From positions 186,001 through 250,000 of IMG/VR virus record IMGVR_UViG_3300012988_000001: 64,000 nt of DNA, one strand, 5' to 3'. Under the pieces are notes generated by a model that saw only the letters and a list, made by a program, of their open reading frames with translations, made no database searches and was not told the DNA's origin. Numbering within the stretch: the stretch's first letter is position 1; every line of letters starts with the position of its first letter. Below are positions 2,318 through 7,622 of the stretch, piece by piece. A program made the position numbers and the translations under genes.

Positions 2318-2518
2318 ATTGTCTTCATTCCCCTGCGGGGGGATGAAATTGCCTCAACAAATCTCGTCAAGATATAAAGTACAATAACAATAAGTAACGA
2401 ATTGAGATAATGAATAACGAACGAAGTGAGTTATGAAGTATCGATAATTCTTAGACAATCGTAGATTGGCTAATCAAACAAGTTAGATAAGAATAAATTC
2501 CTATCAAAATTAGAATAC

Positions 2519-2541
2519 AAAAAAACCAGCTAAAAAGCTGG
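2519..2541 (-). terminator. intrinsic terminator after the frameshift extension
   Basis: Minus strand CCAGCT-tttt-AGCTGG-TTTTTTT immediately after the TAA at 2545-2543. Confidence 0.8.
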
Positions 2542-2542
2542 C

Positions 2543-2761
2543 TTATTGTTTGTTTTCTTTAGTTACCTTTTTGTTGTATGCACGAACCAGAAGATCACGT
2601 TCATTTGTAGGCATGTTAAGTAGCATCTCATAATTGGTATTAGTGATATACGCTGCTATTTCTGCAAGTGATGACTTTATCTCCTTGACATTCAGTTCCA
2701 TATCACTAATGACCTTGCTTATTTCTTCTGGCTTTGAGATGAGAAGCTGTATCCGAAAAAA
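2543..2761 (-). CDS. -1 frame extension of the gp26-like gene (gp51-like segment), 70 aa
   Basis: Open frame RIQLLISKPEEI...YEMLLNMPTNERDLLVRAYNKKVTKENKQ starts at slippery T TTT TTC and ends just before a terminator; missed by the ORF track. Confidence 0.75.
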   Translation of the reverse strand, partial: FFRIQLLISKPEEISKVISDMELNVKEIKSSLAEIAAYITNTNYEMLLNMPTNERDLLVRAYNKKVTKENKQ

Positions 2762-3594
2762 TGTGTAGGATCATATTTCAATCCAGTAATTGTCCATTCA
2801 TGCGAACACTCTGAACATTGCACATCCATTTCATGACTAATCCCAACTTCTTGGATTTTGTCAGTCTCGTCACGAACTTCTTTAAGTGTTGCTTTAGGTA
2901 GCGAACTTACCCATTCTGAAATAAATTCTTTTTCTACTACTTCTGTTCCATCAGGTGTATCAATTTTTTCAATACTATCAACAATCATATCAAAGTTTAG
3001 TTGAGTCATTGCTTCAAACACTTCTGTGAACAATTTCTTCTTCTGTTCAACAACTTCGTCCGAATCACCTTCCAACATATCAATGTATTCTGATTTCTTT
3101 TGTTCTTGGAACATACGTTGACTAAAGTCGCTATATTCATTCCATGTATAAGGTTTAAAATACACTTTTAGACCATTAGAAAGTTCTAGAGATGGTTGTT
3201 CACTAAAATAACTCATGCTATCTAGTAGTACTTGAAGATCTCGACTAAAAGCACCTTCATGACTGCAATGAGGGCAGGTTGTTTGAATTTCGTAGTCTTC
3301 TTCCTTGGATGCCACTTTAATCGCAATTAAAAGTTGCTCAACATCGTTAACATAAAGACCACCAGCATCATTAACACCCGGCACACAGTTCTCGATAACA
3401 CGAATTACGGCCTCTCCACTAATTAATGCATCAGGTGTGTTTAGCATGATCTCATCACGTGCTGCACGAGCACATACTCCAAGTTTAATTTTTTCAACAA
3501 CATCTTTATTGTACTTAATGATATTGTTAGAAGCTAGTTTTACAAAGATTTCTTCAATCTTAGTGTACTGGGCTAAAGGGTTCATCTTACTCAT
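2719..3594 (-). CDS. baseplate hub / tail assembly protein (T4 gp26-like)
   Basis: N-terminal NPLxxY, two CxxC (CPHC, CSEC), next to tape-measure-like gene. Confidence 0.7.
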   Translation of the reverse strand: MSKMNPLAQYTKIEEIFVKLASNNIIKYNKDVVEKIKLGVCARAARDEIMLNTPDALISGEAVIRVIENCVPGVNDAGGLYVNDVEQLLIAIKVASKEEDYEIQTTCPHCSHEGAFSRDLQVLLDSMSYFSEQPSLELSNGLKVYFKPYTWNEYSDFSQRMFQEQKKSEYIDMLEGDSDEVVEQKKKLFTEVFEAMTQLNFDMIVDSIEKIDTPDGTEVVEKEFISEWVSSLPKATLKEVRDETDKIQEVGISHEMDVQCSECSHEWTITGLKYDPTHFFGYSFSSQSQKK

Positions 3595-3629: not shown

Positions 3630-3637
3630 TATTTATA
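3630..3637 (-). promoter_or_regulatory. T4-like late promoter
   Basis: TATAAATA on minus strand upstream of gp26-like gene. Confidence 0.65.
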
Positions 3638-3641
3638 AGGA

Positions 3642-5861
3642 ATGTATATGGCAATTGATAACAGTTTCCTTCTTCAACAAATATTGACGGAGCAAACGAA
3701 AAGTAATGATAATATGTCTGCCATGCGTGAAATTTTAGCTGATAGCTTAAAAGTTCAAATCCAGATTGCCAAGAAACAAAGTGGCGGCAGCGGAAACGGA
3801 AATGGTGGTAATCCACCACGGACGGATGGCAATGGCAACCCAGATAGACGAAGAAGACCCCCAGCAAATGCTGGGAAAGATATCTTTAAAAATCTCTTCA
3901 AGGAAATGAATAATTTCACCAGAACAACCATTGGGAATAATGCCACAGCAGCGAACGTAGTAGGCTCTCTAGGGACTTCTGTATCATCAGTGGCTGGTTC
4001 TCTAAAAATGATTCCCGGCCCCGTAGGGCTTGCGGCAAACGCATTCTCGATGATCGTTGATGCGGGTATGGCTGTCTATAACTATATGAATGAACAACTC
4101 CAGATGTATAACCAGCTAAACAGTGCAGGTTTGACATTGCGTGATGGTATGCTAACTGCACGTGCTGCAAGTTCCAAATCATTTATGAGTCTAAACGAAT
4201 TTAGTTCAGCCTTAGAGAAGAACAGCGGTGCATTAGCAGCGATGGATGGTCAGTATGGTGATGGTGTACAATACTTCTCACAACTAATGGGTTCTGTCAC
4301 CGAGTTACAACGTGTAAATGGCCTTTATGGTGTATCTCAACAACAATTAGCAGATCTTGCAGCTAAAAACTTCAAATACAATAAACTATATTCTTCACAA
4401 GATGCATTGCGTAGTATAAACCAACAGCAAAGTACTACAGAATTTGTAACACAAATGACATATCTAAGTAAAACTGTCGGTAAGTCAGTCGATGAGCTAT
4501 TGGGTAAATTTGATTCTATGGGCGACACACTTGATAGTACTGTATCACAATTTGCAATGACTGATAACTGGGGTGTAGATCCAGATAAAGCAGCGGAAGT
4601 GACTAAATCTATGAATAGTGTTTATTCTAGTATGGGTGAAACCGGAGCAATACTTCAAAAGATTAACGCATCTAGATTATCATTATTCTCATTACCAGAT
4701 GAGTATAATAACAACTTTATGCAAAGTTATGCTGATATGATGGAACAATTACAACGGGAAGGTGTAACTGATGCCAAAGAAATTCGTGAACGTATGCATA
4801 ATTTCACAGTTCAGCACCAAGATCAATTGGAACAAGAATTAATAGCACAACAACGTAGTGGAAATATTCAAGCAGCAGCGTTATTGACACAAATTAGAAA
4901 CCAAGAAAAACTCTTCAATGAAAGCAACACTAAAACTAATGCACAACTTGAAGCATATACAAATAATTTCAATATATGGATTAGTAAAACATTTACTCAA
5001 CCATTTAATGAAATGTATACCAAAATGCAATTGGGTGCTATGAAGTACTTAAGTGATCTAGCAGATCGTAGTGATGGTGCATTTGACTTTTTAGCTAATA
5101 TGGCAACTGATGCATACAAATATTTCAACGATAATGTGATTGGAATGTTTGGAGTACTAACTGATTTACCGGGTCAATTGGGTTCATTAATATTTGGTGA
5201 ACAATTTGACAATGTTAAAGCTGCATATAATGACTTTATGGGTGATTTGGTGCAAATTCCTGCTCGTTTAGGTTCATTAGTATGGGATTGGCTAACTGGT
5301 AGTGATATGTCTAAATCCAAAGAACAATTAAAAGGTACAGTTGATAATATTTTTGCAGATTATGATAAATTCTGGAAAAGTATTGGAGATATGAAGTTTA
5401 ATTATGATGATATGAAGACTAGAATTTCAGATGCATTCAATAGTATGAAGAAATCAATAGCTGGCTGGTGGGATACTGCGAAGGGATGGTTTAGTAGTGA
5501 TGATCCAGTACCTGCTGAAGCGAAACAAACTTCAAAAAACGGCGTCCCGGCGACAATAAATACAAATACTAATCAGGTACAACAACAGGCACAGGTTATT
5601 GCACAAAATAAACCTCAAGCTCCCCCAGTGGTAGCCGAACCGCCTAGTAAAATGCCCGAACGTATTTCAGAAGAAGCTAAAAAGAAAGATGACCAACCGA
5701 CAAATCCTATACAACCACCATTGGTAAATTACGATGAGTCAATCCTAGCAACATTAAAAGCTATATCTGGATCTTTAGATTCTAATAATAGTAATACTCA
5801 ACAGCTAGCTCAACTTCTTCGTCAAATTTCGGAGAACACCGAAGCACAACGCCAAACTTAA
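3642..5861 (+). CDS. tape-measure / baseplate hub protein (gp29-like)
   Basis: 739 aa helical, Ala/Gln/Ser-rich, periodic W/F in C-terminal half; beside gp26-like and portal genes. Confidence 0.6.
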   Translation: MYMAIDNSFLLQQILTEQTKSNDNMSAMREILADSLKVQIQIAKKQSGGSGNGNGGNPPRTDGNGNPDRRRRPPANAGKDIFKNLFKEMNNFTRTTIGNNATAANVVGSLGTSVSSVAGSLKMIPGPVGLAANAFSMIVDAGMAVYNYMNEQLQMYNQLNSAGLTLRDGMLTARAASSKSFMSLNEFSSALEKNSGALAAMDGQYGDGVQYFSQLMGSVTELQRVNGLYGVSQQQLADLAAKNFKYNKLYSSQDALRSINQQQSTTEFVTQMTYLSKTVGKSVDELLGKFDSMGDTLDSTVSQFAMTDNWGVDPDKAAEVTKSMNSVYSSMGETGAILQKINASRLSLFSLPDEYNNNFMQSYADMMEQLQREGVTDAKEIRERMHNFTVQHQDQLEQELIAQQRSGNIQAAALLTQIRNQEKLFNESNTKTNAQLEAYTNNFNIWISKTFTQPFNEMYTKMQLGAMKYLSDLADRSDGAFDFLANMATDAYKYFNDNVIGMFGVLTDLPGQLGSLIFGEQFDNVKAAYNDFMGDLVQIPARLGSLVWDWLTGSDMSKSKEQLKGTVDNIFADYDKFWKSIGDMKFNYDDMKTRISDAFNSMKKSIAGWWDTAKGWFSSDDPVPAEAKQTSKNGVPATINTNTNQVQQQAQVIAQNKPQAPPVVAEPPSKMPERISEEAKKKDDQPTNPIQPPLVNYDESILATLKAISGSLDSNNSNTQQLAQLLRQISENTEAQRQT

Positions 5862-5876
5862 TTGGAGAATTAATTA

Positions 5877-7622
5877 ATGAGTTGGACTAAATTTATGACA
5901 ACAGCGAGGTCGAAAGTATCGACCTCCAAAATAGAGCAAAGCAAAAGTCCTTCAAAGACAACTGGCTCTAAGTCGAATTACGCGTCATATTTGCCAGTAG
6001 TATATACTGGCTTATCTAACCGTACTGATCGATACAGACAATATGAACAAATGGACCAAGATCCTGAAATTAGAACTGCTCTTGATATTATCGCAGATTT
6101 TTGTACTCAAAGCGTTGAGGATTATGGTCTACCATTTAAAATTCGCTACAAAGATAATAGCATTGGTGATTCGGAAGTAACAACTTTAGAAGACCGTCTA
6201 GAATCATGGGCTGAACAAAATGATTTCAAAACTCGAATTTATGAAATTGTACGTGGACTTCTTAAGTACGGCGATCAATTCTTTATTCGTGACCCAGAAA
6301 CAATGGAATGGATTTGGGTATCACCTGCAAACGTAGAAGGTGTATTCGTCAACGAAGAAACTGGTAAAAATCCAGTTGCTTACTTTATTCGTGACGTTTC
6401 TTATAATATGCAGGATAAAATTTTCACAAACCTTCAAATAGGATATGACAAAATGGCATATCCGGGTACTATGCCAAACGCATTAGCAGGTTCTGCTAGT
6501 CAATTTGGTGGTATCGGTGGTGGTTATGCTAATGCTAGTAATGCTAACAGTGCAGACCCATTTAGTATGGCTGCTGGACGTAAAGATGTTATTCCAGTTG
6601 CAGCAGAACACGTTGTTCACTTAACTTTAAATACCGGACAAGACCCAGTATGGCCTTTCGGTACTAGTATTCTTGAATATATCTTTAAAGTATATAAACA
6701 AAAAGAATTACTAGAAGACAGTATCATCATTTATCGTGTACAACGTGCTCCAGAGCGTCGTGTATTCAAAATTGATGTTGGTGAAATGCAAACTCACCAA
6801 GCAATGGCATATGTTGAACGTTTCAAAAACGAAATCCACCAGCGTCGTATACCTTCTAATAAAGGTGGCAGTACTTCACTAATGGATGCAGCATATAACC
6901 CACTTAGTATTTTAGAAGACTATTTCTTCCCTCAAAGTTCTGAAGGTCGTGGTAGTTCTGTAGAAACATTACCGGGTGGTGATAACTTAGGTCAGATTGA
7001 CGACTTGCGTTATTTTAACAACAAATTAATTCGTGGTCTACAAATTCCAGCATCTTATCTTCCACAAGGTCCAGATGATGGTGGTGTAGCGTTATTTGGT
7101 GATGGTGCGACACAAGCTATGGCTAGTGAATTGCGTTTCAATAACCAATGTCAACGTTATCAACGTTTAATTGCGAAAGTATTTGATATGGAATTTAAAC
7201 GCTTCATGGTTAAAAGCGGTTATAGTATTAGTGCTTCATCCTTTGAAGTAATCTTCAATCCACCAATTAACTTTGCTTCTTATCGTAAAGCAGAATTGGA
7301 TGCGAAACTTATTAATACTTACATGCCACTTGATAGCTTAAGTTATATGTCTAAACAAACCATCCTTAAGAAAATGGGATTCGAACAAAGCGATATCGTA
7401 GAGAACGAACAAAATTGGCTCAAGGAAAATCCAGATGCAATGGAAAAACAAGCTGCTTCTGATGAAGCTGGATTACAATCTGTCGGTATTGATGCACCTA
7501 ACGATCCGGGTATGGATTTAGGCATGGATGAAGACGGTAATATGGAAAGTGCTGATAAAGAGTTCCAAGATATGGTTGGAAACAATGATTTTAACCCGAA
7601 TAATTTAGGTTCTTCTTTCTAA
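5877..7622 (+). CDS. portal protein (T4 gp20-like)
   Basis: LEDSIIIYRVQRAPERRVFKIDVG, EDYFFP, GSSVETLPGG, IDDLRYF motifs. Confidence 0.96.
   Translation: MSWTKFMTTARSKVSTSKIEQSKSPSKTTGSKSNYASYLPVVYTGLSNRTDRYRQYEQMDQDPEIRTALDIIADFCTQSVEDYGLPFKIRYKDNSIGDSEVTTLEDRLESWAEQNDFKTRIYEIVRGLLKYGDQFFIRDPETMEWIWVSPANVEGVFVNEETGKNPVAYFIRDVSYNMQDKIFTNLQIGYDKMAYPGTMPNALAGSASQFGGIGGGYANASNANSADPFSMAAGRKDVIPVAAEHVVHLTLNTGQDPVWPFGTSILEYIFKVYKQKELLEDSIIIYRVQRAPERRVFKIDVGEMQTHQAMAYVERFKNEIHQRRIPSNKGGSTSLMDAAYNPLSILEDYFFPQSSEGRGSSVETLPGGDNLGQIDDLRYFNNKLIRGLQIPASYLPQGPDDGGVALFGDGATQAMASELRFNNQCQRYQRLIAKVFDMEFKRFMVKSGYSISASSFEVIFNPPINFASYRKAELDAKLINTYMPLDSLSYMSKQTILKKMGFEQSDIVENEQNWLKENPDAMEKQAASDEAGLQSVGIDAPNDPGMDLGMDEDGNMESADKEFQDMVGNNDFNPNNLGSSF

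Follow-up and report, generated by a model that had tools for sequence, protein, structure and literature searches.

The region analysed is a 64,000-nucleotide stretch (the window) of IMG/VR record IMGVR_UViG_3300012988_000001, which belongs to a complete 366,160-bp phage genome with terminal repeats. Its nearest public relatives are Rak2/GAP32/121Q-type jumbo myoviruses, namely Salmonella phages 7t3, Munch and SE_PL and Klebsiella phage fENko-Kae01 at about 78% nucleotide identity, followed by Asteriusvirus, Eneladusvirus and Mimasvirus at about 65%. The first-pass annotation of a T4-type phage is better stated as a Rak2/GAP32-like jumbo myovirus with T4-like morphogenesis genes. The features of the locus are as follows.

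2719..3594, minus strand: frame-0 ORF from ATG 3594 to TAA 2721-2719, a gp26/gp51-family baseplate-hub assembly protein (predicted short form, 291 aa).
2755..2761, minus strand: slippery heptamer T TTT TTC in X XXY YYZ phase (codons CAT TTT TTC).
2543..2755, minus strand: -1 frame extension of 70 codons (RIQLLISKPEEI...KENKQ) plus stop TAA 2545-2543; base 2755 would be read twice.
2771..2773, minus strand: TGA, the last stop in the -1 frame upstream of the heptamer.
2699..2701, minus strand: first ATG in the -1 frame, codon 20 after the shift, and start of the 52-aa ORF annotated in relatives.
2513..2544, minus strand: intrinsic-terminator-like hairpin (2544-2523) plus T run, directly after the -1 frame stop.
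3630..3637, minus strand: TATAAATA, a T4 late-promoter-like motif 36 nt upstream of the hub gene ATG.
3642..5861, plus strand: divergent neighbour, a 739-aa virion structural protein, possibly tape-measure-like.

The frame-0 protein matches Pfam PF12322 (T4_baseplate, the family of T4 gp26 and gp51) with E 4e-26 and 92.4 bits against a gathering cut-off of 24.5, covering model positions 4-215 of 219, and it matches phrog_150 'baseplate hub' with E 1e-29. It is the only PF12322 gene in the genome. Four cysteines, C107, C110, C260 and C263, are invariant in alignment A1 and form zinc-ribbon-like pairs, with a weak Zn_ribbon_4 hit at residues 256-268. In Yersinia phages fHe-Yen9-03 (842-1717 of the locus retrieved) and fHe-Yen9-04, the orthologous hub gene is annotated as 'Lead, cadmium, zinc and mercury transporting ATPase; Copper-translocating P-type ATPase', evidently a misannotation that was perhaps triggered by the Cys pairs. 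On the divergent side, the 739-aa gene (phrog_14121, E 3e-227) is followed by the portal (PF07230), two small structural genes and the prohead protease, while small ORFs and an endonuclease VII gene lie downstream of the hub gene. The late-promoter-like motif is not enriched in the window (5 found, 6.9 expected) and is only a lead. The terminator-like element consists of a 9-pair stem with 4 GC pairs followed by TTTTGTATTC; three such sites were found in the region against 0.7 expected. Further downstream, a 32-nt intergenic sequence (2445-2476, minus strand) has a second copy with one mismatch elsewhere in the same genome (108261-108292), and contigs of four sequencing runs join it to other flanks.

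The first-pass annotation proposed a hidden programmed -1 frameshift at this gene, and its observation is correct. Frame 0 reads CAT TTT TTC GGA TAC ... AAG AAA TAA, placing T TTT TTC in phase, 11 sense codons before the stop. The -1 frame is closed by TGA 2773-2771, three codons before the site, and is then open for 70 codons to TAA 2545-2543. A shift would therefore join 280 and 70 residues into a 350-aa product with the junction ...YDPTHFF|RIQLLISKPEEI..., and the terminator after the -1 stop puts both frames on one transcript end. The 52-aa ORF from ATG 2701 is also real.

A heptamer followed by an open frame in a single sequence could be due to chance; the conservation could not. Retention of the heptamer in orthologues had been set in advance as a criterion on which the proposal would stand or fall, and it is retained. 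We examined 14 GenBank relatives from three named genera (Asteriusvirus, Eneladusvirus and Mimasvirus) plus unclassified phages, 24 IMG/VR loci with hub proteins 24-79% identical, and one further lineage. In every frameshift-type homologue examined, the heptamer is T TTT TTC in the same phase. In a codon alignment of 35 distinct genes, 19 columns have an invariant residue with degenerate codons; 17 of them show synonymous variation, and the only two that never vary are the TTT and TTC of the heptamer. The preceding codon encodes His, Asn or Ser but always ends in T. The slippery sequence is thus conserved beyond what the encoded residues require.

The frame-0 stop lies 1 codon (distant lineages, PBECO4), 4 codons (CBB, GAP32, XbC2), 5 codons (the uncultivated relative L046) or 11 codons (the window, 7t3, BF, A4) after the heptamer, and the frame-0 tails differ. 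In contrast, the -1 frame reads FFR-x-[RKQ]-LL-x-x-x-P-E-E-[IV], continues for 69-76 codons in all lineages, and aligns without gaps from the heptamer onward across 22 sequences. Synonymous changes are found at -1-frame third positions, such as Arg CGG/CGT/CGA, Ser TCA/AGT and Pro CCA/CCG/CCT. Per-position entropy is highest at frame-0 position 3 upstream of the site (1.29 against 0.9 bits) and at -1-frame position 3 just downstream (1.22 against 0.92 and 0.66). Nei-Gojobori pN/pS was saturated and barely discriminating at this divergence, since it does not separate the frames over the first 11 overlapping codons (0.57 against 0.59) and does so only modestly over 18 codons (0.58 against 0.73); we therefore rely on the other evidence for protein-level conservation of the -1 frame.

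An alternative is that the locus holds two ordinary genes, in which the hub protein ends at its frame-0 stop, the downstream segment is made only as an independent small protein by reinitiation or translational coupling, and the heptamer is a by-product of a conserved Phe-Phe motif. In favour of this, all 13 annotated GenBank records inspected list separate CDSs, with a 39-69-aa 'hypothetical protein' downstream, and none annotates a joined CDS; several lineages have a TAATG stop-start overlap typical of coupling or a nearby ATG; and in the window an ATG is preceded by a weak AAGG 11 nt upstream. Nevertheless, the position of the first -1-frame start is not conserved, being at codon 3, 4, 7, 14 or 20 depending on the lineage, and of two further homologous loci, L019 has no ATG before codon 32 and L032 has none within 45 codons, both having only in-frame TTG/GTG codons. 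In the window, no ATG, GTG or TTG lies in the -1 frame between TGA 2773-2771 and ATG 2701. The 14-20 residues upstream of the starts are conserved in the -1 frame right from the heptamer, and they can be translated only by ribosomes arriving from the hub gene. Together with the frozen Phe codons and the colinear in-frame fusions described below, this makes the two-gene explanation very unlikely, although some additional independent synthesis of a small protein is possible.

The extension gave no Pfam hit even at E 10, but it matches phrog_18291. A profile of the extension built from the window and IMG/VR loci only was searched against 1.84 billion representatives and found 309 proteins at E up to 0.001. 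Most are 50-100-aa ORFs, but about 20 of the best 150 are 319-351-aa proteins with PF12322 in front and the extension in frame at the C-terminus. Their junction, LD-x-x-x-x-FR-x-K-[LI], is colinear with the predicted frameshift junction, and their DNA has no T run and no in-phase heptamer there, so they are not homopolymer sequencing errors.

In all three contigs recovered for such in-frame long forms, from uncultivated relatives (L042, L043 and L045), a short PF12322 paralogue of 276-300 aa lies immediately upstream in tandem and ends 3-5 residues after the NF[LM] motif, where frame 0 ends in the frameshift clade. The synteny, with a divergent large structural protein followed by portal and protease, is the same as in the window. 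The predicted long product of the window is much closer to the long paralogues (E 7e-35, 3e-28 and 3e-17, with alignments running into the extension; the first is the closest full-length match) than to two of the three short ones (5e-11 and 9e-10); the third short paralogue (9e-21, L045) scores slightly better than its own long partner. Conversely, the window's own complete genome, five other genomes at least 92% complete and five partial contigs of the frameshift type each contain exactly one PF12322 gene. So the heptamer occurs where there is one gene and is absent where there are two. No phylogeny was built to order frameshift and duplication, because divergence is too high for a reliable root.

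This distribution, together with the conservation described above, also argues against the possibility that the heptamer and the open -1 frame are an unused chance or relic feature, with only the short protein mattering. Direct expression data are lacking, and the short paralogue of L045 (2750-2789) ends ...GCT AAT TTT TTA AGT AGT ACA TGA, which contains an in-phase T TTT TTA whose -1 frame closes after one further codon (TAG); this may be a relic of a former slip site or a coincidence of the N-F-[FL] motif. We consider chance the least likely of the explanations.

T4 gp26 (208 aa) and gp51 (249 aa) both match PF12322 and phrog_150, although sequence identity between the window protein and the T4 proteins is very low. 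gp51 extends about 45 residues further, and precomputed annotations give it a second family, PF28602, which was not part of the Pfam copy searched here. T4 uses two separate, divergently transcribed genes and has no slippery site; gp26 ends shortly after an FF motif, near which the short form described here also ends, and encodes it TTC TTT, which is not slippery. A profile of the predicted long products aligns with the gp51 family through to its last residues, with LL-x-x-PEEI pairing with LL-x-PDE[IV] and Y-x-x-x-L-N-M-P-x-x-[DE]-R pairing with Y-x-L-x-S-I-x-x-M-I-P-x-E-R. The first-pass annotation had likened the extension to gp51 through a motif that is not the literal T4 sequence. The extension family alone (176 sequences) against the last 70 residues of 92 gp51 homologues gave an hhalign E of 5.5e-4 over 62 colinear columns, with a score of 27.1 against 12.0 +/- 3.0 for 100 column shuffles, one of which reached it, whereas alignment against the single T4 gp51 sequence was not significant. 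We take this as probable, not proven, homology, a moderate result that does not settle whether the long form belongs to the gp51 subtype. T4 gene 26 also yields a second product, gp26', by non-standard decoding; however, this is in-frame internal initiation giving an N-terminally shortened protein, not a frameshift giving a C-terminal extension.

No solved structure was found by sequence. An AlphaFold2 model of a natural long form (P0145, from an alignment of 17 long forms) is confident (pLDDT 89.8, pTM 0.84), and in it the extension is predicted to form four helices (251-260, 264-293, 298-302 and 306-326). Foldseek searches against PDB and Swiss-Prot found nothing, BFVD returned only the T4-like 'baseplate hub (assembly) protein' family, and a VIA wide search returned only generic helical hairpins with Z up to 8.3.

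No convincing stimulatory element for frameshifting was found. The single-sequence fold downstream of the site gave z = +1.0, the only consensus helix in the alignment fold pairs the heptamer itself with the downstream GAAGAAA at -2.3 kcal/mol, and no upstream SD-like element was seen. Such an element is not obligatory in phage G/GT-type sites, and the frame-0 stop 1-4 codons downstream in many lineages may help, although this is an inference. The site is a homopolymeric T6 run, and its conservation and the fusion logic fit equally well with transcriptional slippage, in which RNA polymerase adds one U so that a subset of mRNAs carries the long form in frame without ribosomal slippage; the lack of a stimulatory RNA structure for ribosomal shifting also speaks for this model. 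Contigs from four sequencing runs show only T6 with no indel, but assembled contigs are uninformative for rare variants and do not exclude this model. Nevertheless, the run never lengthens to T7 or more in any lineage. As background that was not tested here, efficient slippage of bacterial RNA polymerase generally needs runs of about 8-9 A or T, whereas six is enough for tandem tRNA slippage, and the analogous tail-gene shifts of lambda G/GT and P2 E/E+E' are ribosomal. We consider transcriptional slippage unlikely.

With high confidence, we propose that the single PF12322 gene of this phage is decoded in two ways. Most ribosomes would read frame 0 and terminate at TAA 2721-2719, giving the 291-aa short form, while a fraction, probably low since no stimulatory structure was found, would slip back one base on U UUU UUC, where the two tRNA-Phe can re-pair on UUU UUU, and then read CGG and 69 further codons to TAA 2545-2543, giving a 350-aa long form with a roughly 70-aa helical C-terminal domain. 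In this view, the short form corresponds to T4 gp26 and to the short tandem paralogues of other phages, the long form corresponds to T4 gp51 and the long paralogues, and both are presumably needed, in unequal amounts, for assembly of the baseplate hub. What our analysis demonstrates is the site, its phase, its nucleotide-level conservation, the conserved -1 reading, the colinear in-frame fusions and the pattern of one gene with the site against two genes without it; that the slippage is ribosomal, its efficiency, the functional equivalence to gp26 and gp51, and any chaperone role are our inferences. To date, no protein-level, ribosome-profiling or reporter evidence supports the shift; raw proteomic data were not examined for trans-frame peptides such as YDPTHFFR and IQLLISKPEEISK, and the published CBB virion list contains neither the hub homologue nor the small ORF (PMC5259590). 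The interpretation offered by the first-pass annotation is partly supported: comparative evidence strongly favours the frameshift and its two isoforms, and the tandem paralogues lend independent support to the two-isoform logic, but the chaperone and tape-measure claims are not established.

In lambda gpG/gpGT and in the tail assembly chaperone (TAC) genes of other long-tailed phages, a -1 shift on an X XXY YYZ heptamer near the 3′ end of a tail-morphogenesis gene likewise gives a short and a C-terminally extended isoform with a shared N-terminus and no strong RNA stimulator; phage P2 E/E+E' uses T TTT TTG, giving a T6N site a precedent in a myovirus, although this was not tested here. The proteins here likewise appear to be assembly factors rather than major virion parts: T4 gp26 and gp51 are listed as hub assembly chaperones, with gp51 required but absent from the particle (PMC3004832), and the hub homologue is missing from the CBB virion list. 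However, the protein family is unrelated, with no Pfam or fold match to known TACs in the searches described above, and the gene does not lie between tail tube and tape measure genes on the same strand, but is divergent from a possible tape-measure-like gene next to the portal.

The first-pass annotation called that neighbour tape-measure-like; that it is a tape measure rests only on weak leads. The 739-aa protein has no Pfam match, although its CBB homologue, CBB_251, is abundant in the virion proteome and one of the best-covered virion proteins (29 peptides, 50% coverage; PMC5259590). It shows a weak local BLASTP match to the T4 gp29 C-terminus (E 5e-4 for a single comparison, partly low complexity), and its language-model neighbours include tape-measure families at 0.93-0.94; it could be a tape measure, or a head or internal protein next to the portal. 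Binding of the hub protein to a tape measure is not shown: a complex prediction of the short form with residues 1-700 of the neighbour gave no verdict and is not evidence either way, and absence of the hub homologue from the CBB virion, although consistent with a chaperone, is indirect, so that these observations leave the point undecided.

A broader reading, which we regard only as a tentative possibility, is that the gp26/gp51 family is the T4-lineage functional counterpart of the G/GT system, in which a short and a rare long isoform cooperate in building the hub and tape-measure core, their ratio being set by a -1 frameshift in single-gene phages (Rak2/GAP32-like jumbo phages and many uncultivated relatives) and by two separate genes in T4. 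If so, T4-like phages would no longer be an apparent exception to the conserved tail-gene frameshift, and the low-abundance, 'catalytic' behaviour of gp51 would have an explanation.

Programmed -1 frameshifting in phage tail genes is known, but only in the G/GT-type chaperone families. Here, the same decoding most likely occurs in an unrelated family, with its site conserved across a very wide set of large myoviruses. Full-text literature searches found no description of a frameshift in gp26/gp51-family genes or in Rak2-like phages, although absence from the literature searched is not proof; its occurrence in this family, its breadth and the equivalence to two-gene arrangements, including that of T4, appear to be new. 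The finding probably links two poorly understood T4 hub assembly proteins as the short and long versions of one ancestral function, provides a natural experiment of one gene with a slip site against two genes without one, corrects the annotation of a 'hypothetical' 50-70-aa ORF in dozens of jumbo-phage genomes, and makes directly testable predictions about how the T4-type hub is assembled.

SegE-type GIY-YIG homing endonuclease genes sit next to the PF12322 gene or genes in several uncultivated relatives (L043, 8619-9143; L046, 3992-4438; and the contig of P0145, GCA_015689235.1) and may have promoted rearrangement of the locus. In the P0145 contig, the portal gene is 1015 aa, with an intein (PF14890) splitting the Portal_T4 domain, whereas the portal of the window (5877-7622, 581 aa) has none.
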